This document shows positions 7,578 to 45,741 of a DNA stretch of 64,000 nucleotides, one piece after another. Where the stretch lies: positions 197,345 to 261,344 of the forward strand of contig NW_005434621.1 in assembly GCF_000315625.1 (NCBI RefSeq), written 5' to 3'. Position 1 is the first letter of the stretch. Each line of letters starts with the position of its first letter. This DNA comes from Guillardia theta CCMP2712. Taxonomy: Eukaryota; Protista; Cryptophyta. The notes beneath the pieces are model-generated. The model was not told where the DNA came from. It ran no database searches and saw only the letters and a program-made list of their open reading frames with translations. The position numbers and the translations under genes were made by a program.

Positions 7578-7826
7578 AACTGCACAGAGTCGCAACAGCC
7601 GTCGGTGACTTGCTGCTCCGATGAGCTTCGGGCAACTGGAGGGAGGGGCACACACGGATTGAGCAAGGAAGGAAGAGGAGGAGAAGGGGAGGAGGAAGGG
7701 GGGGAGAAACGTTGAGAGTGAGGGAGGACAGGATGGAGTAAAGTAAGCTTGACTCCTTCATTGCTCCTCAAAAACAACATTGCACAACTTCGTGATAAAA
7801 ATTCGGAGATGAAAACTTGTCACAAA

Positions 7827-10800: not shown

Positions 10801-11241
10801 ACATGGACCGGATGATTTGATAGTCTCTGAAGGGGTAGGGGGGTACCTCGGCACTGCAGGTGTTTTTTTGTCAACCTTGTTTCAGTTACGCCACAACATT
10901 GTACCCTACCCTTTGACCAAAAAAGTACCCCACCCTCTGTGAAGAATCTTCAACTTGCTAGTACCCCCACCCCCCGTGCAACATGACTCGAATTTACCTC
11001 CGCCCTACACCCGCCCAGGCAATGCAGTGCCCTGTGAAGGAGCTGATGGACGGGGGCAGATGAAGAGGGGAGGGCAGGGAGAGGGGAACAGTGAAGGCAG
11101 CAGCAAGACGTTCGATCCCGTCAGCACATTGCTACCGTCAGAGTAGAACGCTGATCTCATCTGTGTTGCTGCGGCAGAAACCCTTTCCAACTCTTGTCCG
11201 CACTCACATCCAGCAAACGGACTGGAAACGTTGGAGGAACC

Positions 11242-14200
11242 ATGGCAGCTGTGTATGTGGCTACCCGGAAGGGACGAATAAGGGGGAAGAAAGCGGCTTC
11301 CATCCCTACCATTCAGTTTCCTTCCGAAGAAGACAGCATCCTCATCGCAGAGCTTCACCGGCAAGTCCTCAGGTATTCTTGTCCTCCTCTCCCTTTCAAT
11401 CCCGTGACTGTGCAATGCCGCGACAGCACCATCGGAGACACATGGCAGCGCAGGAAAGTTTGTCTGAGCAAGGACAAGCTTCTGCTCGGAAAAGTCGGAG
11501 CGATGGACGTGATTGACTACATACCGCTGGATGAGGTCATGGCCGTCGTGTCCAAGACAGCTCCATCAGAACAAACAGAAGACAAGTCCCATAACCAAGG
11601 AGAGAAGAGGGCCAGCATCAAGCGATCGACAACTCTGAGGATAGACGACGTGAGTCTGCCGCGAGAGCCTCTCTCTACGTCCGCTGTTTGATCATGAGCA
11701 CAGGACGAGCTGGACGAGAAGATCTTCATCATCACGACCATACCCGAGGGACACAACTCGGGCAAGTCGACAGTGCTGCTGGCATCGAGCAAGGATGAGC
11801 GAGACACTTGGGTATGGAGCATGATGGTGGAGAGGAGCTAAAGGTGTGTGTTTGAACAGATCACAGCTATCCACCAAGCTGTCAAAGTCTATCTCAAGGA
11901 AAAGCTACGGCAAGGAGAAACGAAGCTAGAGAGGCGACAGAGGCAGCTGAGAAGAATCTACTCGAGCACAGCAAGTCAGCTCTTCTTCTCGGCTGTGATC
12001 ATGGCGTCTTTCATTTGCGCCATCCTGTCGGCGCAGCTGCAGCCTCCAGACGGCTCGCAACAAGCGAGAGCGTTCAGAGCCTTGGAAATAACCTACACGT
12101 GCATCTTCGCATTTGTACGTACAGCAGGTGAAGCGAGGGGTCGCTGACGAGGGAGGTAGGAGCTGGTAGTCAACGTGCTGAGCAACTGGTACTGGCCGTT
12201 CGTATCGGACGGGTGGAACATCCTCGGTGAGGAGGGACGAGGGTCTGGGGAGTCATCTGACATTGTAGGGGCGACGCGCATGGGGATGCAGACTTCGTGG
12301 TCGTGATGATAACTGTTCTTTCGGAGATCATCCAAGGGGTGCCTGGGCTGAGCGCGCTACGTCTGATTCGTATCTTCAAGATGATACGAGTGTTCAGGTG
12401 GGGAGAGATAGAGTAGCAGGAGCAATGCGAGGGAGAGAGCAAGAGAGGGAGAGAGAGGGAGGGAGATGGGGGAAGAGACGGGCGTAGGTAGGGGCGCAGA
12501 TGTGACAAGAGGGACGAGGATAGCGACTGACTTGGAATGCGGCGGGACAGGATGCTCAACTCGTTCCGCGTGCTGATCAACGCCCTGTCGTCTTCGGGTA
12601 GGAAGGGAGCAGGCGGGCATGAGAGGAGAGAGCTGACGAGGGGACGCAGTCATTCCTGTGCTGAACGCGTTCTGCATCTTGCTTATCTTCACGTCGATCT
12701 TCGCGATCATCGGGACGAACGTGTTTGCTGGGAGGAGCGAGGACTTCTTCGGGAACTTTTTGAAGTCGATGTTCACCCTCTTTCAAATGGCAACGGGAGA
12801 CTCCTGGGCGTCTGCAGTGACGCGGTCGCTGTTTACTGAAGATGAACACTCCAACTTCTGGGCAAGTGGAGGTCGGGGAGAAGGGAAGGGAGGGAGCTAA
12901 GCTTTTGTGCGGACAGACGGCGATGTACTTTGTGGTCTACATGCTCATCGTCAACGTGGTGAGGAGAAAAGACTAGAGACCATGGCGAGGAGTGAGCAAG
13001 AGAGCCCAGGTGCTGATGAACATCGTGGTGGCTGTACTGCTGGACGAGTTCATCTCGACGGTCGAGCGAGAGCGCAGCGAGAAGAAGGCCAGGAACGAGG
13101 AGACCCTCGTGAGACATGATCGCCCTACATGAAGGGAATAGGAGAGACTGAGACTTGCTGTGCTGTACAGATCGGACTCGTGAGGGAGTTTCACGCAAGA
13201 GGCCCGCTGGACCCACTGGTGACAAGCCTGATGGACTTCTCGACGCTGGAGGAGCTGTCGTTGAAGATCTTCCAGCTCTATCAGGTCGCTCAAAAGCTCT
13301 CGAGCGTCTTGTGGGCTCGCGGACTCACACGTGTGGGAGCAGAAGATGGACCTGGACGAGTCCGGGTCAGTCAACCTCGAGGAGCTCAACTTCGGGCTCA
13401 AGGTAAAGCAGAGTAGAAGGAGCGAAGGACGTAGAGGAACGGAAGAGGAGGAGGAGGAGGAGGAGGAGGAGGAGGTAGACGCTGACAGGCGGGTACATCA
13501 GAAGCTCAAGCTGAGCCCTCCCGTGACGCTGACGGAGGAGGATTGGGACGCGATCACGGACTCCCGGAAGCTGCTGAACTCGCAGGAGGAGCTGGGGCCA
13601 GAAGAGTTCGAGACGATGATCCTGACGCAGATGTCGAACTATGTGCATCGCAAGGTAGAGGGAGGGGAGGGAGAGGAGAGGGGGAGAGGGGAGGGGACGG
13701 GGAGAAGGAGGGGAGGTGAGAAGAAGGGGCTAACGGAAGGCGAAGGTTGCTACGGCGATCAAGAACGAGGCGCAGGAGTTCAACTACGACGTCCTGTTTG
13801 CAATCAAGTCGCTGCTATTCTCAGTGGACAAGATAGACAACCCGATCTTCAAGTCGAAGAAACAGACTCCACGGAAGTCGAAGAGGGAGATCTTGAAGAA
13901 GCTCTTCAACTCTCCTGTTCACAACGCTTTCTCGCACTGGAAGTCGACTGTGACAATTGCAAACTCTTTGCCAGAGACGAAGTATGCGAATCTGGAGGAG
14001 ATTCACGTTTGCATTCAAAGAATGGAATCTACTCTGAGCAAGATCGTCTCGGATCCTTCCCCAGGTAGACCCCAGGACCTTCACATCCTCCGACTCACCG
14101 ACGCCGTGGAGAAGATACAGTCGTCCATGTCGCGGCACGACGACACCTTGAGAAGGATAGAGGAGAAGATGTCTCGGATGGAGAGGCACGGGAGCGAAGG

Positions 14201-23519: not shown

Positions 23520-23683
23520 GGTTGTTGTTTCCTGCCTTGCAAAGGCACCTAATACGAAACATCACATTTCATGTATTTTCACAATTCCAGGTAAATGTGA
23601 TGGCTTCAAGACCCCTGGCTCACACAGCTAATCGATTTTGGCATTGTTCAAACAAAGACGACATCCGCATTATCACCACCGAA

Positions 23684-23727: not shown

Positions 23728-24421
23728 CCAGCATCAGCGTTCTGACAGAATGATGATGATGCACAGATTCCAATGCCTTATGCACCATTACTCTCATCGA
23801 ATTTGTTATTATCGGTGTTCGCTCTTATGCTGACTCCGTTCACCGCTCTCACTCATTCCCATTCTCCCTCTTCCACGCTCTTGAATCTCCTGCCTTTACC
23901 CGCTCCGTTTCCTAGTTTCCTCCCTCCTTCCCTCGCCTCCCTCCTCTCTCCCTCCTCTCTCCCTCCTCTATCCTTGCTCTCTCCCTCCTCTCTCCCTCCT
24001 TCCCTCCATCCTCTCTCCTCCTCTCCTCGCATGCTTCCTCACCGTATCCTTGCATGGCGATTGCAGGTAAACGAAGAGGCAGATGTTGAAAATGATTTAG
24101 CTTGATACTTTTAAAAAATAATCAGTTAGCTGAATGCAATGAACGGAATCTTCCCGGACTTGGAAATGAGGTGGGTACTGGGCTTATAAAAGAGGGGGTC
24201 GGGTCAGGAGGTGGGTTGTATCGAATGGAGGCACTCGATTTTCCGACGACCAAGTAAGGCGGAGATGCGCGAGGAGGAGGAGGACGAGGACGAAGAAGAC
24301 AAGAACGATGAGGACGAGGACGAGGATGAAGATCACGATGAGGAACATAGATAGTGAGTCTGATCACTTTGGGTGAAAACAGGCATGTGGATGCTAGATA
24401 AGATTCATGTAGATGCAGAGG

Positions 24422-24606
24422 ATGTCAGTGTTGAGATATCATGAGGAAGAACAAGAGAAGGAACGAATAGGCGAGGCAGAACAAGAGGATTCAGATCTCG
24501 ATGATTTGGTACAAAAACGTAGGTTTATCCTTATCTCAATGCGAGCCTAGCGAAACCGATTGGACAGTTTTAAACTTTTCCCAAGGAGAGAGTAAGCGGA
24601 GGATGT

Positions 24607-24642
<36 letters not shown>

Positions 24643-26609
24643 AAAGCTTTCAAGGGAAGGTCTGGTCCCTTATGACCTCTGATGCTACAGGTCTGTGGTT
24701 GAGTACGTCTGGATAGGAGGGGACGGGCCCCTAGACCTCCGGTCGAGGGCGAAAGTGCTTCCTAAGACGGTTCAGGGCCTCGAGGATATTCCCGATGCTG
24801 GCTTCGACGGCTTCCAGACAAACCAGGCTCCACCCGACTGGTGATTTGAAACCTTTGATGAGTCTTTCTGTGACGAGGTGGCTGATGCTATTTTCCTTCC
24901 CAGCTCGGAGGTCAGAATGAAACCCCGAGGTCGGAGCAACCCGCTGCTCTGCTCCTCCTGCTCTTGTAGCTGACTCGCTGCCCAGCTCTGTTTCAAGACC
25001 CATTTAGGCCCACCGGTCTGAACCTGATGGTTCTCTGCGACTGCTGGTTGCGAGAGCCATGGCTGAATCGCCAGGAACTGCTCACCCTGATTCGCAGGAG
25101 TCCTGACAAACGACCGTTGCCGTCCAACACGAGGATCATGGCGCAGCAACTGTTCGACGTGCAGCCTCAGGCCGAGCCTTGGTTCTCAGTAACGCAGGTG
25201 ATGGGAGGCTCCTGGGGCAGAGCAGAGGTCCTGACGCTCGCTCTAGGAGTACACCATCTTCAAGGACGGAAAGCCCCTGGGCTGGCCATCCGCGACCGCG
25301 AGAAGTTTTGGAGGTGATTTGACGTGAACGGCCTCCAGCTCGACCTGACAACAGGATTAAGGCCCCACAACGCAGCTGGGCTATCCCGGGCCGCAGGCGA
25401 TCGATCCTGTGTCGCTGCGAAGCAGGCTCTCATTCCCTGACAGGGTCCATACTACTGTTCGGCTGGAGCCGATGTCTCCTTCGGAAGGCAGATAGCAGAG
25501 GCGCATTTGAAAGCTTGTCTGTGCGCAGGTTGCTTCATGATTGGCTTCTGTCACCTGTTCACAACTTGCTATCTATCAAGGTGTCAAGATCAGCGGCGTT
25601 CATGGCCAACCGATGCCAGGACAGGTTCCGATAGATCTGTGGAGTTGTGAGTGCGTTTCCTCTAAGACGTGTTCAAACTTCAGTGGGCGTTCAAGGTCGG
25701 GACTTGCCAAGGGATTGAAATGGGGGATCATCTCACCATGGCAAGATACCTTCTGAACAGGTTGCCTTGAACGTAGTTTCGATTCCTTCCTTCACTCGCT
25801 GCCTGTCAGAGTTGGCGAACACTTCGGATGTGTAGTGTCATTCGATCCCAAGCCAATTCCAGGTGAAGCTGGACAAGGCTTTTTTCGATGCAGAATGGTG
25901 AAATCTCTTGTCAGGGGACTGGAATGGAGCCGGATGTCACACAAGCTTCAGCACGAAAGTTCGTCGCATCATTGCGCTTGCCCATCGTTCGTTCTTGACT
26001 GGGAAGTGTCAGGCGATGAGGGAGGTGCCAAATAAAGGAGAGGTTGGAGGCTTCGAGGAGATCAGGCTCGTGTATCCTTCATCTTGTGCTGGAGGTGAAG
26101 GGAATGCAGGAGGGGCATCATCAACCTCGAGAGGAAGCATCAAGTGAGTTGACTTGCACTAGCTCAATCGTCTGACAACCTTGAAGGAACATATCATGGC
26201 CTACGGAGAAGGCAACGAGAGGAGATTGACGGTCTGTCGTGTCGTCAGTCGGGCATGAGGTCTGATGGCAAGGCAGGGGATGCATGAGACAGCGCACATC
26301 GACACCTTCTCCTGGGGTGTTGGAAACTGCATGGCTCACATCCGAGTACCCAAGTACCATGAGGGCGTCGTGGTTCTCAACCCTAACCCTAGGATCGTCT
26401 TGCAGGTCAACTGAGATCGCAGGATGTGGATACCTCGAAGATCGCAGGCCGGCGTCAAATATGGTATCACCCCGCACCAGTGTCATGTACTCCCTACCGT
26501 TGCATCTCCACCGCCCCAGTCCTTTCTCAAGCAGCTTCTTGACGCTTTCATGTTGCAGGACCCTTATGTGGTAACTTCTATGTTGTTCAAAACTTGCTGT
26601 TTGGATTAA
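24422..26609 (+). CDS. Glutamine synthetase type II-like protein with a degenerate active site
   Basis: [82 protein letters not shown]. Junction phases are consistent from 24691 to the stop. The 5' junction (about 24591-24691) is not resolved. Confidence 0.9.
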
Positions 26610-26811
26610 AACAAGCATCACGCGAGAGATTTCGATTAAGCTGTTTACTAGAACGAAGGTGTATCAACATCTCGTGCAAGACAAGAGTCTTCACTGCGAC
26701 ATTTAAAAAGTTCGCACACTGAAGATGAAGATGAAGGTCAGAGCTGTGGAGATAGCCTCCGAAAATCTCTGTGACAGGCGGATCGGCACCACCAAGAGTG
26801 CTATGTGGCCT

Positions 26812-28858
26812 TCATTTCTTTAGAAGGTTGGCAAAAGGGTCATTAGAGGCGTTAGCTTGAGCTCCCGAGGAGTTCCCTGAGCCTCCCATCATCATCTGCC
26901 AGAAATCATAAGGCAAAAAATCGATTCAGGAAGTGACATCAATACTCACGCCTGAATTCATGCCCATGTTGCCCATGCCGCCTCCCATTCCCATGTTGTT
27001 ACCCATACCCATGCCGCCTCCCATGCCCATGTTGCCCATGCCCATGCCCATATTATTGCCCATGCCCATGCCCATATTATTGCCCATGCCCATGCCCATA
27101 TTATTGCCCATGCCCATGTTACCGCCCATGCCCATGTTACCGCCCATGCCCATGTTACCGCCCATGCCCATGTTGCCCATTCCCATTCCCATGCCGCCTC
27201 CCATGCCCATGTTGCCCATGCCCATATTATGGCCCATGCCCATATTATTGCCCATTCCCATGCCGCCTCCCATACCCATGTTACCGCCCATGCTCACGTT
27301 GTTGCCCATTCCCATGCCGCCTCCCATGCCCATGTTACCGCCCATGCCCATGTTGCCCATGCCCATACCCATGCCGCCTCCCATGCCCATGTTGCCCATG
27401 TTGCCCATGCCTCCCATTTGATTGTTGGGCATAGCATGACCCTTTTGTCCTGGAAATCCTCCTCCTTGCTGAGGATTGGGTGCCATGAGACCAGCGTACG
27501 GGTTGTTCACATTAGCTGCTTGACCTGAACCGTAGAGTGCCAAGATATCATCTTTGCTCTTCTTGGGATGTGCATCATGCGAGCCTCCAAAGTCAAAGTT
27601 GCCAAAGTCCGCGTTTGTTGAAGGCTGTGAAGTACCAAAGGAACCGAAGTCATTTCCTCCATTGCCGGTGGCACCGTTTGATGAGAAAGGGTCAGAGCCT
27701 CCGAAGTTGCCGAATGGATCTCCTCCAGCGCCAAAAGGATCTGATTGTGCTTGGGGAGCTGCTGCAGGGGCAGGGGCAGGGGCAGGGGCAGGAGCCGAGA
27801 AATCGAGCAGATCGACAACAGGAGCGGCAGCTTTTCACATTGTAAATCAAACATCTTTCGTCGGGAAACAAAAAAGACTAACCCGGTTTCGGCTGTTGTG
27901 ACGGTTGGTTAGCAGTGCCAGAAGACACATTCAGCTCTTTCTGAAGCTTCTGGGCAAGCTTGAAGTCTTCAGCCTCTTGATGCTTCTTCTTCTCCTGGAT
28001 GGCCAAGGAAAGTATCAGACGGGAATTTCAAGGATGATCGAAATCACCTCATGGGTGTCATTGGCTGAAGCGTTACCTCCCTTGGACCCTCCCACAGCAA
28101 TCCACTCCTTACGCTCGTACTTGGCCCGGATGAACTCCTCTAAATCCCTGAAAGCAACCAGCACCGTAAGCACAGCACAAGTATCGTGATAACATTCAGT
28201 TCACAACTTCTCTAGGCGGGCACTCACAAGGACGAGGTGTTCTCATTCGGTTTCTTGTAATGTCTGGTGTTGGTGTTGCCCTCGAAGTAAGCGTTGGATA
28301 CCTTGTTTCCTCTGGCTTTCATCCACTGCAAGGAATCCTCAACCAGAAGGCAAGGACTGAGAGGAAGAGGAGAGGAAGAGGAGAGGAAGAGGAGAGGAAG
28401 AGGAGAGGAAGAGGAGAGGAAGAGGTGAGGAAGAGGAGAGAGGCAGGAGGAGAGATGGGGGAGGGGTGGGGGGGGGTGAGGCGAGGCGAGGAGCAGAGAA
28501 ATTCACCTCTGCCCACTTGATCTTCCAGCCGTCAAGAGTCACAGACTTCACTTTGGAGATGTGAACACCGAGCCTCCTGTGGATCCCAGAGCAATTGAGA
28601 CAGACGAAGATACCAAGATTCATCGAAGCCCAACGAGGACCTGAAAGATGCCTTCAACCATTCGCGCATCCACAATCACCAGTTGGATTCACCCAGTGCA
28701 TTGCAGTCAGCGCAGTGCCGATTGTCCGGATTCTTGATGCATGCGTCCAGAATCTTTTGTGCCTTGTCCTTTTCTTGAGACGAGATCTGAGACCCGCTCA
28801 TGTTGAAGTCCGAGGGGTCAATGCCCAGTTCTTTCATATGATCTTCAGGAGAAGACAT
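26812..28858 (-). CDS. ArfGAP (SMAP/AGD5-like) with DLL/DPF motifs and a Met-Gly-rich tail
   Basis: [47 protein letters not shown] zinc finger; FIRAKYE; DPFG repeats; ends [10 protein letters not shown]. Confidence 0.92.
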
Positions 28859-32028: not shown

Positions 32029-35000
32029 ATGGCTGATCCTAGATACAAGTACGTGCAAGAAAGGATTGAGCAGGGGTTGAGGGGTTGGGAGTTCAGTCCA
32101 TCGGTCGATTCTCTGCTCTCCCAAGGGAAGAACCGCCAAATCCTTGAAGATTTTATGAAACCAAATGGACCTGAAAAAATGATGATATGCTGTCAGGTAG
32201 TGAACTCTTGTTGACAGAAGATTTTTCCCTGACAATTTTGCTCTCACAGCGAAGTACCAGCGGGAAGAATAAGTTGTACATGACCACGGGACAGGACGAA
32301 ATTCTGAATGGCAAATGCTGTTACTTCACAAGAGTTAATCCGAAGGGGATTGATGTCAAGTCCTTTGAATTGGATTGCGCTTATGGAGAAATTGTTGGAA
32401 ATCCACTTTCAAACTTCAACGTGGTAGTACAAGACGTTTTCCGGGTACGTTGCCTGTTGTCGTCATCACATAAGCCTCATTATTCTGTTCCCTCAGCCCG
32501 CAATCGAGTCTGAAGAGTCCTTTGGAAAGTGCCCTGAAGAAAATTGGAAAGAATACTCTGGCACTGTGTCAAAGTTTGCAGAAATGCTCACAGAAGCTGT
32601 ACACAGTCTGAAGGGTGGAATTGAGTTGCCTATGCCCGATTCAAAATATGAAACAGTAATTCTTTCACTTCGTCTCGACCTATCTGACTGAAACTTTGCA
32701 AGATTCAACCCACCCAGCCGGCTTTCGCCAAAGCTGCTGTTGATAGGTTTAATTTTTTTCATTGATGTTTCGTGAATGTAAAACCTCTTATCCAGCGACG
32801 TCGTAACTCACTTCGAAAACATCGTGGAGAGATGGTGCTCGCAAATTGAAGATCTTCTCGATGAAAAGCAACCTCCTTCCAAAGACGCTGATGATTCTGG
32901 CCCTGAGACAGGTAAACCATCTTGCCAAAACGATGTTGAACACTCTTGACACGTTGTATCAGAGTTCGAATATTGGAGGACAAGGATGGCCAAATTCAAT
33001 CATGTTGTAGAGCAATTGAAAAAGCCCATCGCTAGAGTTGTGATTGGTGTGCTCACTACCGCCAAATCAAAACACTTGAAACGGTGGAAGCTATGTGACA
33101 ATGGGATCACTGACGCATTGAACGAGGCCAAGGACAATGTCAAATACCTGTCTACTTTGCAAAAGTATACAGAACCACTGTATACAGGCACACCTGAAGC
33201 GATCATTGAAAGCCTTCCTGCTTTGATGAACAACGTAAAAATGATGTTGACCATTGCCAGATACTACAGCACTCAAGAGCACATGACAACTTTGTTTGTC
33301 AAGATTACGAATCAGATGATCAAAACTTGCAAGAAGAGTATTGAATGCCCTGTCATTGGAGAGAACAAAGTCAGGTTGTGGGACCAGGACTATGAAAGCT
33401 TGCTAAAACGACTGGAGATGAGTCTTAAGTTGAACGATGCGTATCAAGAGCTTTATCGCCTTACCAAAGAAAAGCTTCAGACCCAGCCCAAAGTGAAACA
33501 ATTCGATTTCAATGAAAGTAGAATATTCGGAAAATTTGACCTTTACTGTAAAAGAGTTCAAAAGCTCATGGATATGTTTACTACCATAGTACAATTCAGT
33601 GCCCTTGCAAATAACAAAGTTGAAGGTATGGATTCTTTGATTTCGCAATTCTTTCAGCTTGTTGATGACTTCAAGAAAAAACCTTACGACCTTTTGGACT
33701 ACACCAAGAATGCATTTGATCGTGATTTTCTTGAGTATAATGTGAACATTGCAGAATTGGAGACTCAACTCCAAGGGTTCATCAATGCAAGTTTCGAAAA
33801 CATTACAAGCACTGAACATGCTCTTGCGTTGCTTAAGCAATTCGAGACCATTCTGCAAAGGGAAACTCTCAAATCCGATCTTGACAGCAAGTACACCGTC
33901 ATCTTTCACAACTATGGTCTAGATTTAGAGACAGTGCAGAAAATCTACGACAAGCAAAAAAATGCCCCTCCGACTGTTCGCAACTCTCCACCAGTTGCAG
34001 GCAATTTGATTTGGGCGAGGCAGTTGCTTCGAAGAATTGAGGACCCGATGAAAAAGTTTCAAGCCAACAAGAACATCATGACCACCAAAGAGTCTAAAAA
34101 AATCATCAAGACTTACAACAAAGTAGCACGAGCTCTGATCGAATATGAAACTCTTTGGCATCATGCTTGGTGTAAGTCTATCGAGGCAGCAAAGGCTGGT
34201 CTTCAAGCTTCACTGATTGTGAGACATCCGAAATCAGGAAGGCTCTTCGTGAATTTTGACAGAGAGATCTTACAGCTAATGCGAGAGACAAAATGCATGC
34301 AGCGGATTGGAATTGAGGTTCCAGAAAGTGCAAAAATGGTCCTGTTGCAAGAGGACAAATTCAAATCCTATTTCAACCAACTTTTGTTTGTATTGAAGGA
34401 ATACGACAGAGTCCTAGGAAAAGTCATTCCTGTGATTCGTCCACTTCTGAAGCCGCATCTCGATGATTTGGACAGGAAGATTCAACCTGGAATGTTGATG
34501 TTGACTTGGCAGTCCATGAACATTGATGGGTATCTGAACAGAATTCATCAGGGTCTTGCGAAATTTGAAGAACTTGTCAAGAAGATCAACGACCTCATAG
34601 AAAACCGAGTGGAGTCAAATCTCAAATATATCAGCAAGACATTGCTGGTTGATATTCAGTCAGATTCTTCATTCACTTTGGATCAATTCGTCATCATGCA
34701 AGAAAAGGTGACCAAGAAGAAAACTCAGATGATGGATGCCAAGAATCTCGAGGTTGAGCGTGCTGTTGAAGATCTCATCAACATAGTGCTCAATTTTCCC
34801 ATTGAAGACACGGAAGTTTCCAGTATCAGCGAAGAGACGATCCAGAAATTGAGGGATCACTATAGCCGGCTCATGTACTTGGCTATCTTGAACACCACAA
34901 AGAGCTCCTTTCATACCTTGAAGCGCAGGCTGGCATCGCGATCTGGAATGGGGGCAATAGTCGCTGACAAGCCCTTCTTTGACGTAAATGTAGAGCTTGC

Positions 35001-38000
35001 AGTGCCACATGTTACTATGAACCCGAGCTTGGATGAAATTCAAGCAGCGATCAATCGATGTGCCATCAATGTGTTGAAGTGTTCGAAGAGTATTTGCCAA
35101 TGGGGCCAAGACCGTACACAAGATGTCAACAAGCTCCAGACATTTCACTCATTGATTGCCCAAGACCGCGAGATCGTGAAAGTTGTCCTTTTGCTGACTG
35201 GAAGTGTTGAAGGTACAAAAAAACAAGTCCATGATTACCTCCAGACATTTTTGCAATATGAACATTTGTGGAAAATGGACAAACAGGCTGAATATAAAAA
35301 GTTCATGGCAACGGAACCGGACAACGAAGCATTTGATAATGAATTGAAGAAATATGTTGAAATTGAGCTCACAATCGACAATATTCAAAGGGTGCACAAT
35401 ATTGGATGTATGTCGTTGGATACAAATCCAGTGAAAAGCTCGCTAAAGTCAGAAGCTGCTGCATGGAAGTCCCAATATTCTAGAAATTTGCATTCGCAAG
35501 CACGAGACGAAATGTTATCATTGCAAGATATGATGAAAGAGACACTTCAGAAGCTTGAGCGTCCATTGAATGATTTAGATGACGTGCGAGATGTCATGAA
35601 TGTGCTGAAAGGAATTCGAGAGCGAGAGTCCGAGATCGATTATCAGATCATACCTGTTCAAGAGAAGTATCAACTGCTCTCAAACAACAACGTGTATGTT
35701 GAAAAAGAGGAGTATGACGAATTGAGCAACCTTGAAGAGACATGGATCAGGGTCAAATCTCAAGCAATGGCTGCTGGAGACCGCCTTGCTAGCTTGCAAG
35801 CTGGGTTCAAACAAACCTTGACGGAAAATGTGAAAGAATTTGTTGCTGATGCGAAAGATTTCAGGCAAGATTTTGTTGACAACGGCCCTATGGTGCAGGG
35901 AATTCCACCCATGGAAGCTGCTGAAAGGTTGAACAAGTACAAGCGATTGTTTGAAGAGCGACAAAGAAAATGGGATTCTTATTGTGAAGGAGAAGAGCTG
36001 TTTGGTTTACCCATAACCCAGTATCCAGAACTGGAACAGTGCAAGAAAGAACTTGAACTGCTGGACAAATTGTATTCCTTATACGTGAACGTGGTTCAAG
36101 GAATCAAGGGATATGGCGATCTGCTATGGGCTGATGTTGTAGCAAATATCGACAGCATGACAGAAGCTGCCACTGCATTTCAGTCTCAGTGCAAAAGAAT
36201 GCCCAAGCAGCTGAGAGATTGGGAGGCTTACGGCGAGCTGAAGAAAACTATCGATGACTTCTTTGAAGTGCTGCCACTGTTGCAGCAATGTTCAAACAAA
36301 AGCATGAGAGTTAGGCACTGGAAGGCAATAATGCAAGTATGTGGCAAACAGATTCCGATGGACGAAAATGGTCCGTCGGCCGAAAACTGCAAATTGCAGC
36401 ATGTGCTAGATCTTGGAATGGTTTCGTTCTCGGAAGATATTGAGGATATTGCCGGGGGATCTGAAAAGGAGTTGCAGATCGAGAACAAGTTAGACGCTAT
36501 CATCCAAATTTGGGAAGCCCAAGCATTCGCATTTTCCCCTTTCAAGAATCGAGGTCCTGTCATTCTTGAAAGCAAAGCTTTGGGTGAAATCATGGAATCT
36601 TTGGAGGAATCACAAATGAATCTTGGGTCAATGGCTGGCAACAGATACTCAGCTCCCTTTCGTGAGAGAGTTATGGAATGGATAGCAAATCTTTCCACGG
36701 TATCAGATGTTGTAGAGCAATGGGTTGCAGTGCAGAATCTCTGGGTGTATATGGAAGCGGTGTTCTCAAGTGGAGACATTGCAAAACAACTTCCCCAAGA
36801 GGCAAAACGGTTTCAAACAATTGACAAGAACTTCATGAAGATCACTTCCAAGGCAAACGAAGTTCCGAATTGTGTTCAACTTTGCTGTGGGAATGAGTTG
36901 ATGAGGACACTTTTGCCACATCTCACGGAACAATTAGAACTTTGTCAGAAGTCATTGACGGGTTATCTGGAAACCAAAAGAAATTGTTTCCCTCGCTTCT
37001 ACTTTTGCTCTGATGGTGTCTTGCTAGAAATTCTTTCTCAAGGTTCTGACCCTCATGCAATCGTTCAACATTTGCAAAACGTCTTTGATTCTTTAGCTGC
37101 GCTTTCATTTGACAAGCAGAAGAAGAATACTGCTGTCACTATGGTTGCTAACGACAAAGAAGAAGTGAGGTTTTCGACTCCGTTGAATCTTGGTGGAAAT
37201 GTTGAGGATTATCTAGGGGATCTCGTGAATCAAATGCAGGAAACTTTGCATGATATTTGCAGGGAATGCGGAGCAGAATGTGAAGGAATGAGCTGTGAAG
37301 AAATCGTCGAGAAGTTTCCAGCTCAAGTTGGCATCATGGCTATTCAATTCCAATGGACCAATGAAACAGAGGATGCACTCAAGCGAGCTCGACAAGACAA
37401 GTCTTCCTTGCATGGTTCGAATAAGAAAGCACTGGCCGTTCTCAATGAATTGATCGGAATGACGGTGATTGACAAATGGAACAAATTGGAACGCACCAAC
37501 ATCGAAACTTTGATTACCATTCAAGTTCATCAAAAGGATGTTTCAGAAGAGCTTGCAAAGAAGAAGGTGAAGGATCCACAGGATTTTGAGTGGTTGAAGC
37601 AAGCACGATGTTATTGGAAGGTAGAGAAGGACTGGACGGTCATTTCAATATGCGATGTTGATTTCGATTATTCACACGAGTATCTTGGATGCAAGGAGCG
37701 CCTCGTTGTCACTCCATTGACAGATCGATGCTACGTGACACTCTCTCAAGCGATCGGAATGTTCCTAGGAGGAGCACCGGCTGGTCCTGCAGGAACTGGA
37801 AAGACCGAGACCACTAAGGACATGGGACGAATGTTAGGAATTTTTGTTGTTGTTTTCAACTGCTCTGATCAGATGGACTACAAGGCATTGGGCAAGATTT
37901 ACAAGGGTCTCGCCATGGCTGGTTGCTGGGGATGTTTCGACGAGTTCAATCGCATTGACTTAGATGTTTTGTCAGTTGCTGCCTCTCAAGTAGCCTGTGT

Positions 38001-41000
38001 TTTGGCAGCACAACGAGAACGCAGCAAAGAGTTTGTGTTTACTGATGGACAAACAGTTCAATTGAGACCTGGATGCAGTTATTTCATCACCATGAATCCT
38101 GGCTATGCAGGAAGGCAGGAGTTGCCTGAAAACTTGAAAGCCTTGTTTCGTGGAGTTTGCATGATGGTTCCAGACTTCATGTTGATCATCAGGGTGAAAT
38201 TAGCTGCATGTGGATACTATGAGAATCAGGTCATTGCTAAGAAGTTTGACCTTTTGTACAATTTGTGCAAGCTGCAGTTGACAAAGCAGACGCACTATGA
38301 CTACGGACTTCGAAATATCCTCTCTGTCTTAAGGACAGCTGGTAAAGTCAAGCGTGAGAACCTCAGTGCACCTGAGCCATTCTTGATGATGCGAACACTA
38401 CGTGACATGAACATGTCCAAGATGATTGCTGAAGACGTTCCTCTCTTCTTATCTTTGATTGAAGATCTTTTTCCAAACATTACTGCAGAGAAGGCCACCT
38501 TTCCACAGGTTGAGAGTGCAGCAGAAAACTATGCAAAAGAGAAGAATCTGCAATGGAAAGAAGCTCCTGAATGGGCGGGCAAGGTTGTGCAGGTTTTGGA
38601 GACCTACTTTGTAAGACATGGGATTGGAATCGTTGGGCCCACTGGAGCTGGAAAGACTATGGCGTTGGAAACACTCGCAGGGGCATTGACGATGACTGAC
38701 GAGAAGCACGTCATCTTGAAAATGAATCCTAAGGCTGTGACGGCTGCCCAGATGTTTGGAAAGTTGGATGCCACAACTGGAGATTGGACAGATGGAATCT
38801 TTGCTGTGCTATGGAGGAAAGGAACCAAGGCAAAGAACTCAAAGACTTGGATTCTGCTCGATGGTCCTGTAGATGCAATTTGGATTGAGAACCTGAACAC
38901 CGTGCTGGATGACAACAAACTGCTCACTCTGGCGAATGGTGATAGAATTCCGATGACGCCTGAGATGAAGGCAATCTTTGAACCTGAGAACTTGATGAAT
39001 GCCTCTCCAGCTACTGTTTCCCGCATGGGAATCATCTTCTTCTCTATCAGTGTCCTTGGATGGAAGCCATTGGCTCAGTCATGGCTGCAGACGAGGAGAG
39101 ATAAGGAACATCAGATCTTGAGAAGTCTCATAGACAAGTATGTTGACCCCCTGTTTGAATTCCTGTTCCGAGACTGCAAGGCTGTTATGTACTCCACAGA
39201 GGGAATATACTTGAACAGTGCCTTCAAGATATTTGAAGAGTTAACTGCTCCTTTCATCGACACCAAACAAATCCTATCCGATGAACACATGGAACGACTC
39301 TTCATTTTTTCGCTGTGTTGGTCCCTTGGTGCCCTCCTGGAACTCTCGGATCGTACCAAATTCAATGAGAAGTTGATTGCAATCGCAGAGAATGCTCCGA
39401 ATCTTGACGAGGGCGATACCTGTTATGAATATTTGGTCGACGCGCAGGGAAATTGGCAACATTGGAGAACTAAAGTTGAGTCCTGGGAGTATCCTCAGGA
39501 TCGTGAACCAAAGTTTGCAGAGCTTCTCATTCCAACCTTGGACTCACTTCGATACGAGTCGATGCTTGCTACGTTGGTTCCAGCTGGAAAACCAGTTTTG
39601 TTCACTGGTGGTCCAGGAGTCTCGAAGACTGCATGTATCTTGATGTATCTTACAAACCTGAACGAGGAAATCTACAACATCAAGATGACTCCGTTTTCTT
39701 TCGTCACAACTCCGATGATTTATCAGAGGACTCTGGAGAGCACTGTAGAGAAGAGACAGGGAAGGACTTACGGACCACCTGGTGGAAAGAAGTGCGTCTT
39801 CTTCATTGACGACATCTCTATGCCTGTCATCAACAACTGGGGCGATCAGATCACAAACGAGATAGTCAGGCAAAGCATTGCCGAGGCTGGTCTTTACAAT
39901 CTCGATAAGCCAGGTGAATGGAAGGGCTTGGTGGACATCTGTTACACAGCAGCTATGACACATCCAGGAGGAGGTAGAAATGACATCCCGAACCGTCTGA
40001 AACGTCAGTACTGTCTGTTCAATGTAACAATGCCATCGTTGATCGCTGTAGACAACATCTTCGGATCAATTATCCGTGGTCGCCTGTCCGAATCGTCTGG
40101 AGTACCCAAAGCTGTGGCGAACCTTGCATCGAAATTGACAGAGGCTACCATTCAGCTTTGGCAGAAAACTTCAAGTAAGATGCTTCCAACGCCAGCGAAA
40201 TTTCACTACTTGTTCAACATGCGAGAGCTTTCAAGAGTATTTGCTGGAATATTTGAGGCCCCAAGAGAAACTGTCCGAGACGAAGTCTACCTTGTCAAGC
40301 TTTGGCGTCATGAGTGCGAAAGGGTGTTCTCCGATAAGCTCACGAATCTTGCAGACAAGGAATGGGAAAACAACTGTATTTTAGATGTAATAGAAGATGT
40401 TTTTGGAGGTGAGATGAGAAGCAACGTTCAAGGGATGTGTTATTTCGTGAACTTTCTTGGTGATCCGATCATCGATGCGGATGGAGTGGTCGAAGATGAA
40501 AGACCAAAGCTTTATGAGGAGGTGAAGGATCGCGAGTTCGTGAAGAACAAGGCGTTAGAATTCCAATCAAAGCACAATGAGGAGAACAAGGTTGGCAAGT
40601 TGGAGCTTGTCTTGTTCGAGTATGCCTTGGAGCATTTGATGAGAATCAATCGAGTCATTTGCATGGATCGTGGTTCAATGATGTTGGTTGGAGTTGGAGG
40701 ATCTGGAAAGCAAAGCCTTACAAGGCTTGCATCCTTCATAGCAGGAAATTTCACTTTTCAGATAGTAATCACGAAACATTACAACACTGGAAACCTTTTT
40801 GACGACCTGAAGCTGTTATACAGGACTGCGGGAGTTCAAGGCAAGCCAGTCACTTTCATTTTCACTGATGCCGAAGTCAAAGAAGAAGGATTTTTAGAGT
40901 ACATCAATCAAATCCTTTCCACAGGAGAGGTGTCAGGCCTGTTTGCAAAAGATGAACAAGACACCATCGTCGGGGAAATGCGTCCAATCGCAAAGAAAGA

Positions 41001-44000
41001 GGCAGGAAAGGGTTTCGTGGACTCAGCCGACAACCTTTGGAAGTATTTCCGAGATAGGGCGAGAAACAATCTGCACGTGGTCTTGTGCATGTCTCCGGTG
41101 GGAGATTTGCTTTCAAGTCGCTGCAGGAAATTCCCTGGGCTTATCAACTGCACGACTGTCGATTGGTTCCTTGCATGGCCGGAACAAGGATTGAGAGATG
41201 TGTCAGAGTCGCTCATCGGCAGGTTCGACATGGCGTCCACAGCTGAAGTGAAAGCTGCTGTCATCAATCACATGGGAACGGTTCATAAGATAGTTCAAGA
41301 TGCAACTCTTGAATACTTCCAGAAGTTTCGAAGGAATGTGTATGTCACCCCTAAATCTTACTTGTCATTCATCAAGAGCTACACAGACGTCTACAAACGA
41401 GAGAAAGACAAGGTAGACGTGTTGAAAATCAAGATCGACAATGGTCTTGAGAAGCTCTTCCAAGCACAAGATGATGTCAAGAAAATGAAAGTGGAATTGG
41501 CGGCCGCTGAGGTTGTTCTGGCAGACTCTGTAAAGAAGTCATCAGAGCTCATGAAGGAGATTTCAGTAGCCACGCAGGCAGCAGAAAAGGTTAAATCCTC
41601 TGCCAAGGAGATTGCAGATGCTGCCAATGAGAAAGCTACAACGATTGGAGCTGAGAAGGCTGAGGTCGAACGAGATCTCGAAGCGGCAAAGCCGGCCTTG
41701 CTTGAGGCAGAAGACGCCTTGAAGGCAATCAAACCTGACGACATCAAGAACCTCAAGAGCTTGAAGAACCCGCCTGTTGTCATCAAGATCATCTTCGATG
41801 GCGTGTTGATCCTTAGACGCAGACAGATGGGAGTGAACTGCTACAAGGATAACTATTCGGAAGCCTCCAAGATGATGAACGAATCATCCTTCCTCGCAGA
41901 TCTGCAGAACTTCCCCAAAGAAAGCATCACTGACGAAGATTGTGAGCTCCTCGCACCGTATATCCACCATCAGCTCTTCACAGAGGAGATGGCGGCAAAG
42001 GCTTCTGGCCTTGCTGTAGGTCTTTGCAAGTGGGTGAAAGCGATGGAGACGTATCACATGATCGCCAAGGTTGTGATACCCAAGATGGATGCGCTGAGGC
42101 TCAAGGAGGCTGAGTTGGCCACTGCTATGAAGAAGCTGGCAGCTGCAGAGGCTGAGCTGGAGAAAGCTCAGAGCGAGACAGACAAGCTGCAACAGAAGTT
42201 CGATGAAGCCATGTCAGAGAAGCAACGGCTGCAGGAAGAGGCTGATACCACCAAGAGAAAGATGGATGCTGCTACTCAGCTCCTCAACGGCTTGGCCGGA
42301 GAACGAGACCGATGGACTCAGCAGTCTGCTGATTTTGCAGATCAGATAGCAAGGTTGGCTGGTGACAGCGCCATCGCCTGTGGGTTCATGTCGTACACGG
42401 GGCCTTTCAACAAGACCTTCCGAGATCTTCTCTTGGGCACGCTCTTCCTCGAAGACATCATGTCCAAGAACATCCCTGTGACGAAGAACCTCTCTGTTAC
42501 CACCATGCTCACAGATGAAGCCACAACTGGCCAGTGGAATCTCCAGGGACTCCCTACCGATGATCTGTCGATCCAGAATGGTATCCTGACCACCACGGCT
42601 TCGAGATATCCTCTCATGGTGGATCCCCAAGGTCAGGGCTTGACTTGGATCAAGAACAAAGAATCGAGCAACGATTGTAAAGAAACTAGCTTCGTCGACA
42701 AGATGTTCAGGACACATCTCGAAGACTGCATGTCCTACGGCAAGCCTCTTCTGCTCGCGAATGTCGAAGAAGAACTGGATCCAGTTCTAGATCCCGTTCT
42801 CGACAAGGCATTCCAAAGGAAAGGCAAGGGATACATCGTGGCTCTAGCCGACAAAGAATGCGATGTCGAACCGGAAAAGTTCAAACTGTACGTGACCACC
42901 AGGCTTGCGAACCCTCACTTCACTCCCGAGTTGTCTGCAAAGGTGACGGTCATCGATTTCACTGTTACGATGAAGGGGCTCGAAGACCAGCTGCTAGATC
43001 GTGTCGTTCAGTTCGAGAAACCTGAGCTGCAGACAGAGCGAACAAAGTTAAAGACGGAAGTGAATGATTACAAGGCTAAGATCATGGAGCTTCAAGATGA
43101 CCTGCTTTATCGTCTAGCAAACTGCGAGGGATCCTTGTTGAACGACGAGGACATCATTGACGTGCTCAACATCACCAAGAAGACTTCTGCGGAAGTGACG
43201 GAGAAGTTGAAGAACGCGGGCGAGGCTGAAGAAAGGATCCGCGCAGCTTGTGAGGAGTATCGTCCCATCGCTGCCCGGGGATCAATCATCTACTTCTTGA
43301 TCGCAGAGATGAGCGTTGTGAACCCCATGTACAACACGTCTCTCGCTCAGTTCATCCAGGTGTTCCAGCTCTCCATGGTCCAGTCAGAGAAGGCTGCCAT
43401 CCCAGCCAAGAGGATCACCAACGTGGTGGAGGAGTTGACGTTCCGAACCTTCCTGTACGTCTGCAGAGGCTACATGGAGATCCACAAGAAGATCTACACG
43501 CTGCTCCTTGCGCTGAAGCTGCAGCTGCAGGCCGAGCTCATCAACCAGGATCACTTCTCCTGCTTCGTGAAGGGCGGAGCGGCCCTCGACATCAACGCCG
43601 TGAAGAAGAAGCCCAAGGAGTGGATCCCCGACCAGGTCTGGCTCAACATCATCCAGCTGAGCATGTCGATCCCATTGTTCAAGGAGCTCGCTGACATTGT
43701 GACTCGCAACGAGAGCCTGTGGAAGCAGTGGTACGACCAGGAGGCCCCCGAGGCCGTCCCTGTCCCCGACATCGACGACCGACTCGACAAAGTGAACAAG
43801 ATGCTGCTAGTGCGAAGCATCCGAACCGACCGAACGATGATCAGTGCTGAAGAGTACATAGAAGAGGCGATCGGGAAGAAGTTCACCGACACTTACCCCC
43901 TCAATCTCGAGCAGACCCATCAGGATATCTGCGAGCTCGTGGACAGCCCAGAGCGCGTTCCCGTCATCTTCGTCTTGACTCCCGGGTCCGATCCGACTGA

Positions 44001-45741
44001 GCTTGTGATCGCGCTGGCCAAGAAGAAGAAGAAGGAGGTGCTCTCGGTCTCCATGGGCCAGGGTCAGGAGATCGTTGCCCGACGATACATCGAGCAGTGT
44101 GTGGCCAACGGTGGTTGGGTGCTGCTGCAGAACACCCACTTGGGGCTCAAGTACCTGGTGGAGCTCGAGCAGACCATCGGCAAGCTCGAGGAGATCGAGT
44201 CTGAGTTCAGGGTGTGGATCACAGCAGAACCTCACAACGGCATCCCCATCGGCCTCCTCCAGATGTCCATCAAGATCACCAACGAAGCTCCTGTCGGCAT
44301 GCGCGCAGGCATGAAGAGGTCGTACGCCTGGATCACCCAAGACACCCTGGATGCTGTTCCTCGCATCGAGTGGCGAACGCTGCTCTGGGTCCTGTGTCAC
44401 CTACACAGCGTGGTGCAGGAGAGGAGGAAGTTTGGAGCCATCGGCTGGACGGTCCCTTATGAGTTCAACCAGTCTGACCTGAGCGCCTGCACCAACTTCC
44501 TGCAGAATCATATCCTGGACATGGACGCTAAGAAAGCCAAGGAGGTGACATGGTCCACAGTCCGGTACATGATCGCTGAGATCCAGTACGGAGGAAGGAT
44601 CACCGATGACTGGGATAGGAGGCAGATGAACACTTTTGCTGAGAAGTTCTTCTGCAACGCCGTGCTCGAGCCCAACTACAGCTTCCTCAAGGGCTACACC
44701 ATCCCGCAGGGGACGGACATTAACTTGTTTCGGGAGCACGTTAACTCCTACCCGGCGACTGACAGCCCTGAGGTGTTCGGTCTCAACATGAACGCCGATC
44801 TTGTCTTCAGAGTCGACAACGCCGAGAAGGTGTTTGCAACTATCCTTGAGACACAACCCAAGGGCGGCGGCGGTGGCAGTGGCAAGTCGAGGGAGGAGGT
44901 TGTGACCGAGCTGTGCAAAGACCTTCTCTCCAAGTTGCCGGCTAACTTCAACATGAACGAGATCAAGTCCTCGTTGAAGAAGGCCGGGGAAAGCAAGCCC
45001 GTCAACATCTCCCTTCGGCAGGAGATCGACGTGTTGCAGAAGGTGATGACAGTCGTCCGCAGCACTCTCAATAACTTGCAGCTTGCGATCGACGGCACCA
45101 TCGTTATGTCGGACGACCTTGCCTCTGCTCTCGACTCGCTCTCCAACGCCAAGGTTCCCCCCACGTGGCTGCGAGGCGCCTGGTTCTCCCCTACCGTCGG
45201 CATTTGGTTTCAGAGCCTGATCAACCGCTTCGAGCAGTGGGATAGGTGGATCAAGGGCGGCCGACCCAAATCCTACTGGCTTCCCGGCTTCACCAACGGC
45301 CCAGGTTTCCTGACGGCCTGCCGCCAGGAAGTGACCCGATCGCATTCGGGCTGGGCCCTCGATGACGTGGCAGTGTTCACCGAGGTGACCAAGCACGACC
45401 CTGAGGACGTGAAGGAGTCGCCATCGGAGGGAGTCTACATCCATGGAATGTACCTCGACGGGTGCGGATGGAGCAAGAAGGAGAGCAAACTGGTAGAGGC
45501 TCCTCCTAAGATCCTCTTCATCCCGCTGCCTTGCATGTGGGTCACTGCCGTACAAAAGGCGAACAAGAAGGTTGACTACATGGTCTACGAGTGCCCCGTG
45601 TATGAGCGGAAAGATCCAAGGAAGCGCGGCATGACGGCTGCTCAGCCCAACTTCGTGTTCGCTCCTGAGATCAGGACTGAGGACCCACCGTCCAAGTGGA
45701 TTCTTCGCGGAGTTGCGCTCCTGACGTACTACGGAGAGTAA
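32029..45741 (+). CDS. DNAH5: Axonemal outer-arm dynein gamma-type heavy chain (Chlamydomonas ODA2 / DNAH5-8 family)
   Basis: Five introns of about 50 bp between 32197 and 32962, then one exon 32963-45741. P-loops GPAGTGKT, GPTGAGKT, GGPGVSKT and GVGGSGKQ; WGCFDEFNRI; GPVDAIWIENLNTVLDDN; tail PPVAGNLIWARQL; ends WILRGVALL. Confidence 0.97.

Follow-up and report, generated by a model that had tools for sequence, protein, structure and literature searches.

Gene structure and family assignment

The window analysed here is a 64,000-nucleotide (nt) stretch of the cryptophyte Guillardia theta CCMP2712 (contig NW_005434621.1), and the feature under study is a plus-strand gene that encodes a divergent relative of type II glutamine synthetase (GS II). 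The window is G. theta nuclear DNA, and the public protein for the gene is EKX42345.1 / XP_005829325.1 (P0212), which is annotated as "glutamine synthetase, partial". The product is a type II glutamine synthetase (GS) by homology and fold. It is best read as a conserved pseudoenzyme derived from GS II, and a rewired enzyme is less likely.

The gene was reconstructed by three-frame translation of 24200-26700 together with a splice model. One open frame was obtained, which ended at the stop codon TAA (26607-26609) and was interrupted by at least 17 introns; 16 of these, between exons 2 and 18, were verified in RNA. The introns were short (most 43-63 nt, one 95 nt), and two of them were of the GC-AG type. 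An earlier reading of the letters alone, referred to below as the sequence-only reading, had counted about 12 introns; this number was too low, and the open frame across the introns stood. The coordinates of all features are given in Table 1. The spliced model was 96.5% identical to P0212; the differences were located exactly at the two GC-AG introns, and the N-terminus of the model had no counterpart in P0212. At intron 7, EKX42345.1 used a GT located 12 nt downstream, by which 'AIDP' was inserted, and in 25959-26109 it read through intron 12 and skipped exon 13. Hence, the public model was wrong at two places because the GC-AG introns were avoided. At both of these joints four letters fit on either side, and a shift by three from the leftmost cut gave GC..AG.

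The family assignment rested on profiles and structure. The protein matched NCBIfam GlnII with 332 bits and NCBIfam GGputSyn weakly (E = 1.5e-05), and Pfam Gln-synt_C was above the cut-off; Pfam Gln-synt_N gave no match, and it was below threshold in canonical relatives too. The AlphaFold2 model had a mean predicted local distance difference test score (pLDDT) of 89.5 and a predicted template modelling score (pTM) of 0.90, with low confidence only in the loop 130-160, which holds the mis-annotated insert. Its best matches in the PDB were human and maize GS II, with a template modelling score (TM) of 0.90 and a root-mean-square deviation of 1.6-1.7 Å. The fold of the model is intact. The two-domain fold was the same as that of canonical GS II (maize GS1a, 2D3A; Medicago GSII-1a, 4IS4; human GLUL, 2QC8), and the protein was 44-52% identical to the solved structures and 55-63% identical to protist relatives.

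Substitutions in the active site

The active site was evaluated in maize GS1a numbering, for which P0212 was aligned to 2D3A (phmmer E = 1.4e-112, residues 20-351). The residues replaced in G. theta were S58F, S59Q, E129T, N190H, E192Q, V193P, E199A, Q201K, N251S, A309G, R311C, G312M and S314H, and the residues kept were D56, E131, H249, R291, E297, R316, E330 and R332. The plant GS1 numbering on which the sequence-only reading relied matched this alignment: E129, E192, E199 and R311 were replaced, and E131, H249, R291, E297, E330 and R332 were retained, as it had claimed. The motifs and codons that it had quoted were also present in the DNA (ACG at 25192, CAA at 25607, GCG at 25687, TGC at 26328, and FDGFQT).

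E129, E131, E192, E199, H249 and E330 are strictly conserved cation ligands, and R311, which is called invariable, and R316 are substrate-binding residues (PMC3975887). In Guillardia the six cation ligands read T, E, Q, A, H and E, whereas in the ortholog of Baffinella frigidus described below they read E, E, Q, S, H and T. Hence, compared with canonical GS II, three of the six metal ligands were replaced in the G. theta protein, in addition to R311 and the 'DGSS' loop. Among the arginines R291, R311, R316 and R332, only R311 was changed in Guillardia (to C); in Baffinella R311 was replaced by K and R316 by C, R332 was kept, and the exon for R291 lay in an assembly gap. The 'DGSS' loop read FDGFQT in Guillardia and FDGSQT in Baffinella, compared with DGSS in 112/112 canonical relatives. 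S58 and S59 belong to an N-domain loop lining the active site of the neighbouring subunit, and D56 and S59 are located at the ammonium site of that subunit.

The altered positions are otherwise nearly free of variation. S58, S59, E129, N190, E192, V193, E199 and Q201 were invariant in all 112 full-length canonical relatives. N251, R311 and S314 showed no substitution in the 112 except for one H at S314, the other departures being gaps, and A309 and G312 were invariant save for alignment gaps and single exceptions. Altogether, 18 of the 97 columns conserved in at least 98% of the 112 relatives were changed in the G. theta gene, and the changes at invariant columns are far beyond chance. The changed conserved columns were not significantly enriched in the five cavity segments of PMC3975887 (7/18 versus 11/59, Fisher P = 0.11), because many of the changes fall outside these segments, in the R311 loop and in the loop of the N-domain. 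K326C was considered as a shared gain and was dropped, since it was present in nine canonical sequences too.

One stretch, K-P-x(4-6)-[NPAT]-[GA]-x-[GA]-x-H-x3-S, was kept both in Guillardia, where it corresponds to the KP..NGAG.H...S region of canonical GS II, and in Baffinella (KPIPGEWNGTACHTKFS), with N251 inside it replaced in both. This pattern corresponds to the PROSITE ATP-region signature of GS.

Transcripts and the 5' end of the gene

The stretch was contained in many public runs, and four data sets (X21, X10, X14 and X6) were mapped on 24100-26900. Single transcript contigs of 954-1099 nt joined the exons as modelled, and contigs of X10, X14 and X6 directly showed all but one of the 16 joints from exon 2 to exon 18. 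The remaining joint 16 (26463/26559) was deduced from one X10 contig that covered 26276-26353 and 26558-26623, the spacing of which allows only exon 17. The in-frame intron 4 (51 nt) was removed in the RNA. Over the covered bins the contigs of the three runs, which carry two organism labels, differed from the window in no letter, so the unusual codons are genuine, occur in transcripts and are not assembly errors. The canonical codons, which the sequence-only reading had named as a refuting outcome in raw reads, were not seen in the contigs of X10, X14 and X6. The contig depth was 26-29 in X10 and X14 and 270 in X6. Moreover, nine further RNA contig sets contained exon words of the gene, which is hence expressed in several studies, and the RNA-type contig sets contained about 0.25 of the sampled 31-mers, compared with 0.256 expected from exons 2-18 alone.

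The contigs ended at about 26615-26623, which leaves a 3' untranslated region of only about 14 nt. A convergent neighbour on the minus strand (26630-27543) encodes a long Met/Gly/Asn repeat; its poly(A) site at 26630, which was located from loose ends with T-runs in X21, is about 7 nt from the GS-like contig end at 26623, so that the two 3' ends nearly abut. Words of the gene were also contained in a freshwater metagenome (X7, 28%) and a lake water metagenome (X20, 7%). The host is a marine cryptophyte, and the share in X7 is near the exon-only share, so that spliced RNA, a contaminant or a spike-in may be present in X7. X19 (organism C) contained 9% of the words and may hold the ortholog of a close relative.

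The 5' end required separate consideration. The sequence-only reading had described an acidic N-terminal extension, which corresponds to the segment 24422-24522. This segment could splice in frame to exon 2, and it resembles canonical N-termini (MSVLN...DLPQNGR in P0077, with DL.Q..R just before (V/I)VEY); a possible first exon in Baffinella, MSLLNDSGAARLAEALPSVSTVQ followed by gt, is similar to it. The segment was first accepted as exon 1 on its frame and this resemblance and was then rejected on the RNA word evidence. None of its seven sampled words was found in nine RNA contig sets that contain exons 2-18, and its depth was zero in X10 and X14; the extension is therefore absent from the main mRNA. 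The DNA runs did contain the seven words, as did X6, where one unspliced contig spanned 24234-24598 at a depth of 5.6 versus 270 for the mRNA. The segment could be the remnant of a former first exon, or an alternative 5' exon that is rarely used. Intron 1 also contains another in-frame-looking, poly-acidic piece of open reading frame (ORF; 24257-24354). The junction at 24591-24691 that had been flagged earlier as unresolved proved to lie within intron 1, with a (GA)n repeat, and no frameshift was found there.

The true first exon is short. Upstream of 24691 the contigs carried 25 nt (X10, X14) or 54 nt (X6), which had no match within 24100-24690. A scan for a phase-2 ATG within 25 nt of a donor gave two start candidates (Table 1). 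For candidate A, a TATA-like element, TTTTAAAAAATAA, is located at 24109-24121, which is 25-35 nt before the presumed start near 24146. Candidate B lies outside the mapped stretch, which would explain why the 25-nt and 54-nt pieces found no place. A canonical relative, P0078, likewise starts with M-I-VEYVW. Neither candidate gave a targeting peptide or leader, so the protein is probably cytosolic, as judged from the predicted N-termini.

Table 1. Positions in the window of the exons, selected introns, altered codons and 5' features of the GS II-like gene
Feature	Position	Strand	Basis
Coding exons 2-18	24691..26609	+	splice model, RNA-verified
Exons 2-7	24691-24840, 24904-24929, 24986-25046, 25098-25197, 25247-25313, 25362-25396	+	RNA-verified
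Exons 8-13	25444-25528, 25581-25624, 25684-25760, 25810-25862, 25915-25958, 26013-26065	+	RNA-verified
Exons 14-18	26110-26143, 26187-26231, 26277-26353, 26406-26463, 26559-26609	+	RNA-verified
Intron 7, GC-AG, 47 nt	25397..25443	+	contig joint skips 47 nt
Intron 13, GC-AG, 44 nt	26066..26109	+	contig joint skips 44 nt
FDGFQT codons; canonical (Y/F)DGSST; S58 to F, S59 to Q, D56 kept	24806..24823	+	alignment
ACG, Thr at metal ligand E129; E131 kept two codons later, exon 6	25192..25194	+	alignment
H-G-Q-P at maize 190-193; N190 to H, E192 to Q (CAA 25607), V193 to P	25601..25612	+	alignment
A-F-K at maize 199-201; E199 to A (GCG 25687), Q201 to K	25687..25695	+	alignment
G-N-C-M-A-H at maize 309-314; A309 to G, R311 to C (TGC 26328), G312 to M, S314 to H	26322..26339	+	alignment
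ORF segment (MSVL and acidic run), not in main mRNA	24422..24522	+	in frame with donor AG/GT, 24522/24523
Start candidate A (putative), ATGAG then donor GTGGGT; M-R, then SVVEY	24166..24170	+	ATG-donor scan
Start candidate B (putative), ATGTATTTTCACAATTCCAG then donor GTAAAT; MYFHNSR, then SVVEY	23571..23590	+	ATG-donor scan
(GA)n microsatellite in intron 1	24599..24646	+	sequence; repeat skipped in read mapping

Ortholog, selection and phylogeny

An ortholog was found in Baffinella frigidus as KAJ1485361.1 (P0208, 'hypothetical protein T484DRAFT_2432591', 240 residues), which is encoded at the locus MU646471.1 (L002) of GCA_026770585.1. Unannotated exons were recovered in this locus by tblastn with the G. 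theta model: an N-terminal exon, ...RGRCVVEYVWLGGNGPLDIRSKTKV, and two C-terminal exons, one of which is GLHETAHIETFSWGIDNKLAHICVPR. The exons that correspond to maize residues 255-293 probably lie within a 1,735-nt run of N. Compared with Guillardia, the Baffinella locus has long introns, assembly gaps and exon-like duplicates. In the long introns of L002 7599-14800, several exons recur in two or three additional copies of slightly different sequence (NMLVLCDCWSS.KR at 7599, 8023 and 8348; IAEAHLRACLVAG.KIEGLKAQAMPGQWSFSV at 11164, 11730 and 11983; and a third copied exon at 13217, 13614 and 13742). These copies adjoin runs of N, and they are either real duplications or assembly artefacts.

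The two orthologs were 72.5% identical over 316 aligned codons, and either of them was 53-63% identical to canonical GS II (P0077, P0078). For this one species pair dN was 0.18-0.24 and dS was saturated, the third positions of fourfold degenerate sites being 25.6% identical; within these limits dN/dS ranged from 0.04 (maximum likelihood) to 0.11 (LWL85) over the 316 codons, which is not near 1, the value that the sequence-only reading had named as a mark of a pseudogene.

Baffinella changed 20 of its 90 scorable conserved columns. Of the 18 columns changed in Guillardia, 15 were changed in Baffinella too, where four would be expected (hypergeometric P = 2e-10). The common columns were W53, N54, S59, G65, G127, N190, E192, V193, E199, Q201, N251, A309, R311, G312 and S314, with identical replacements in S59Q, E192Q and S314H. 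The earlier proposal that orthologs with the same substitutions should be sought was thus answered by B. frigidus. K36R, S58F and E129T occurred in Guillardia only; P64R, E69A, G247A, R316C and E330T occurred in Baffinella only, where E129 and S58 were kept. Both orthologs retained D56, E131, N244/G245, H249, S253, E297, Y328 and R332/R333.

In an IQ-TREE phylogeny of 51 sequences, the Guillardia and Baffinella genes formed a clade with a Shimodaira-Hasegawa-like approximate likelihood ratio test (SH-aLRT) value of 99. The stem of the clade was long (0.61), and the tips were 0.16 and 0.35 versus a median tip of 0.21. The pair stood apart from the clade that joins the canonical GS II of G. theta with Rhodomonas enzymes. 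This canonical protein, EKX51862.1 / XP_005838842.1 (P0307), belongs to the same genome and family and is about 54% identical to the GS II-like protein; it keeps all catalytic residues and clusters with the plastid GS II of Rhodomonas. The two host genera are classified in different orders, Guillardia in Pyrenomonadales and Baffinella in Cryptomonadales, so the altered gene is older than the split of the two orders. A burst of change in the catalytic machinery, with a long period of constraint after it, is the pattern of a selected pseudoenzyme or a neofunctionalised paralog, not of a pseudogene. Two metagenomic proteins in the tree, P0029 (349 amino acids, aa; GLEMEMG for GIEQEYT, and GQAEIQV without the Trp of GQWE) and P0003 (428 aa, with large insertions), are divergent GS II-like sequences that keep most metal ligands and have branches of 2.1-2.5.

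Searches and other features of the window

EKX42345.1 was reached by an exon-level search that led to the relatives P0006 and P0077, followed by a region-restricted search. Exon 2, searched against 50% representatives (1.84-billion representative search), matched nothing but canonical GS II, with identities no higher than 58%, and no near-identical representative was found there. P0006 was the nearest of these matches, and a word search with it listed 120 canonical relatives, among which the gene itself was not present. The region P0077:131-190 was chosen as the query because the spliced model ranks third there, and it matched both P0212 and P0208. A tblastn search of exon 2 against plasmids gave no match, Pfam gave none on single exon pieces, which were too short, and Rfam found nothing in the window. 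A scan of JGI metagenomes with exon 2 peptide patterns returned a single match on a bacterial contig (L001), which was dismissed as chance. In an alignment of exon fragments to full-length GS II scaffolds (MAFFT L-INS-i) the fragments were scattered, and this route was dropped.

Elsewhere in the window, a single uninterrupted ORF on the plus strand (32986-45741; 4,251 aa) encodes a complete dynein heavy chain, from DHC_N1 to Dynein_C (Pfam E down to 1e-170). It is intronless amid intron-dense neighbours and lies in the lowest-GC part of the window (42-46% versus about 52%).

Functional interpretation

The gene probably goes back to a duplicated copy of a type II glutamine synthetase. The changes shared by the two orthologs suggest that the active site, which depends on two metals and ATP, was taken apart before the lineages of Guillardia and Baffinella separated. 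The n1 metal site would have lost two of its three carboxylates (E192, E199), and the phosphate- and substrate-binding R311 loop would have been rewritten (A309, R311, G312, S314). Residues on the nucleotide side (G127, N190, V193, N251) and the ammonium-side loop of the neighbouring subunit (W53, N54, S59, G65) would have changed as well. Later, one further n2 ligand may have been lost in each lineage, E129T in Guillardia and E330T in Baffinella. Strong purifying selection has preserved the GS II fold, many core residues and the Glu-flap (E297).

The protein has probably ceased to make glutamine and is most likely a non-catalytic protein with the GS fold, for example a ligand-binding regulator or a scaffold. 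Since several ligand-contacting residues are kept in both orthologs, a ligand-binding role, such as amino-acid sensing, appears to be the most plausible non-catalytic function. A further proposal, that the protein is a metal-independent glutamate/glutamine sensor for nitrogen status or the catalyst of a new reaction, with a more basic His/Cys pocket in place of the Mg/Mn-carboxylate centre, with the glutamate-side residues and the Glu-flap retained, and belonging to an old cytosolic cryptophyte family, is tentative and rather doubtful.

An enzyme with new chemistry would use the rewired pocket for another reaction, metal-independent or with another metal, on glutamate or a related ligand. In its favour, the pocket has fewer carboxylates and gains His, Cys and Lys (N190H, R311C, S314H and Q201K in Guillardia; N190K, R311K, S314H and R316C in Baffinella); S314H is common to both orthologs, and each has a Cys at 311 or 316. 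Moreover, E131, N244/G245, H249 and E297 on the glutamate side and R332 on the phosphate side are kept in both, as is R291 in Guillardia, and strong purifying selection suits an active protein equally well. However, the replacements themselves differ between the orthologs (E199 A/S, N190 H/K, R311 C/K, Q201 K/S, N251 S/K), and each lineage lost a different n2 ligand. Different residues at most of the lost positions, together with the different extra n2 ligand lost, fit relaxed constraint better than a new catalytic set. Furthermore, the known GS-fold ligases with altered substrates, namely the gamma-glutamylputrescine/polyamine synthetases and theanine synthetase, are known to have retained the metal ligands together with the ATP chemistry; they resemble the G. 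theta protein in being divergent GS paralogs, whereas the latter is without the full set. Loss of catalysis is therefore favoured as the probable outcome, and new chemistry is considered unlikely. The sequence-only reading had offered the choice between a selected pseudoenzyme and new chemistry. Its premise of a selected, non-decaying paralog with a dismantled canonical active site held.

Several observations weigh against the reading as a conserved pseudoenzyme. Three metal ligands, several arginines and the ATP-region pattern remain in each species, and some nucleotide- or metal-dependent chemistry may be carried out by such a site. Hardly any reads of the raw RNA run X21 fell on the gene, in the roughly 6% of the run that was read and from a library that looks 3'-tag-like. 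The single ortholog found is incomplete through the 1,735-nt gap, and only two cryptophytes are as yet known to carry the family. Besides the gene itself, no full-length ortholog was present among the best 120 matches of the P0212 search, which could not show fragments shorter than 194 aa. The family may thus have a narrow range or low expression.

An inactive regulatory subunit that assembles with canonical GS II in mixed decamers and tunes their activity had also been suggested from the sequence, and this option was weakened to the point of being quite improbable. EKX51862.1 (432 aa), the sole canonical G. theta GS II that surfaced, begins with a hydrophobic signal peptide, MHAVLGGLLLLLPCTSA followed by F, and a Ser/Pro/Ala/Arg-rich stretch comes after 'TSA/F'. 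This is the bipartite leader of the plastid type that cryptophytes use. The GS II-like protein has no leader under either start, different compartments are predicted for the two proteins, and co-assembly therefore looks unlikely. On the other side, the protein retains the GS II fold together with many core residues that form interfaces, and the active sites lie between neighbouring subunits, so that an inactive subunit would poison the adjacent ones or modulate them (PMC3975887).

A working, perhaps weak, glutamine synthetase despite the three missing carboxylates is very improbable. Guillardia keeps E131, H249 and E330 as well as R291, R316 and R332, which would suit residual activity. However, two of the three n1 ligands and R311, invariant in the 112 relatives, are lost in both species, the ammonium-side Ser is replaced in both, and Baffinella is without E330 and R316 too. 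A decaying pseudogene or an artefact of assembly or annotation, to which the partial public model with its two wrong introns and a start codon known only as candidates might point, is scarcely credible given that 16 introns are exactly removed in RNA, the frame is open, no letter differs in three runs, dN/dS is 0.04-0.11 at saturated dS and the tip branches are like those of canonical enzymes, all in agreement with the earlier argument against decay.

Comparison with known systems and implications

Lengsin (LGSN) is a GS-fold protein of the vertebrate lens that was recruited to a role without GS catalysis. The likeness to the G. theta protein rests on this common idea of a GS fold without GS catalysis. 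Lengsin is a class I-like vertebrate dodecamer, whereas the G. theta protein belongs to class II, comes from an alga and has a separate origin. The GSI-like architecture of lengsin is mentioned in PMC3975887. Literature searches in one paper library brought up nothing on a pseudoenzyme of the GS II class or on EKX42345.1. If the reading as a sensor or a new-reaction catalyst is true, the protein would be the first GS II-class counterpart of the lengsin-type GS pseudoenzymes, and it would occur in a secondary alga in which active GS II is restricted to the plastid.

Glutamine synthetase is among the most conserved enzymes, and its metal ligands are treated as invariant. The gene described here is a GS copy that is without half of its metal ligands and has stayed strongly constrained from a time before two cryptophyte orders diverged. 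Because of the annotation as "glutamine synthetase", a metabolic reconstruction of G. theta would include it as a cytosolic GS II in error. The gene offers a natural experiment on the roles of the GS decamer besides catalysis, such as sensing, scaffolding and regulation, and it bears on how the cytosol of a secondary alga may sense nitrogen status when the canonical GS II is predicted to reside in the plastid.

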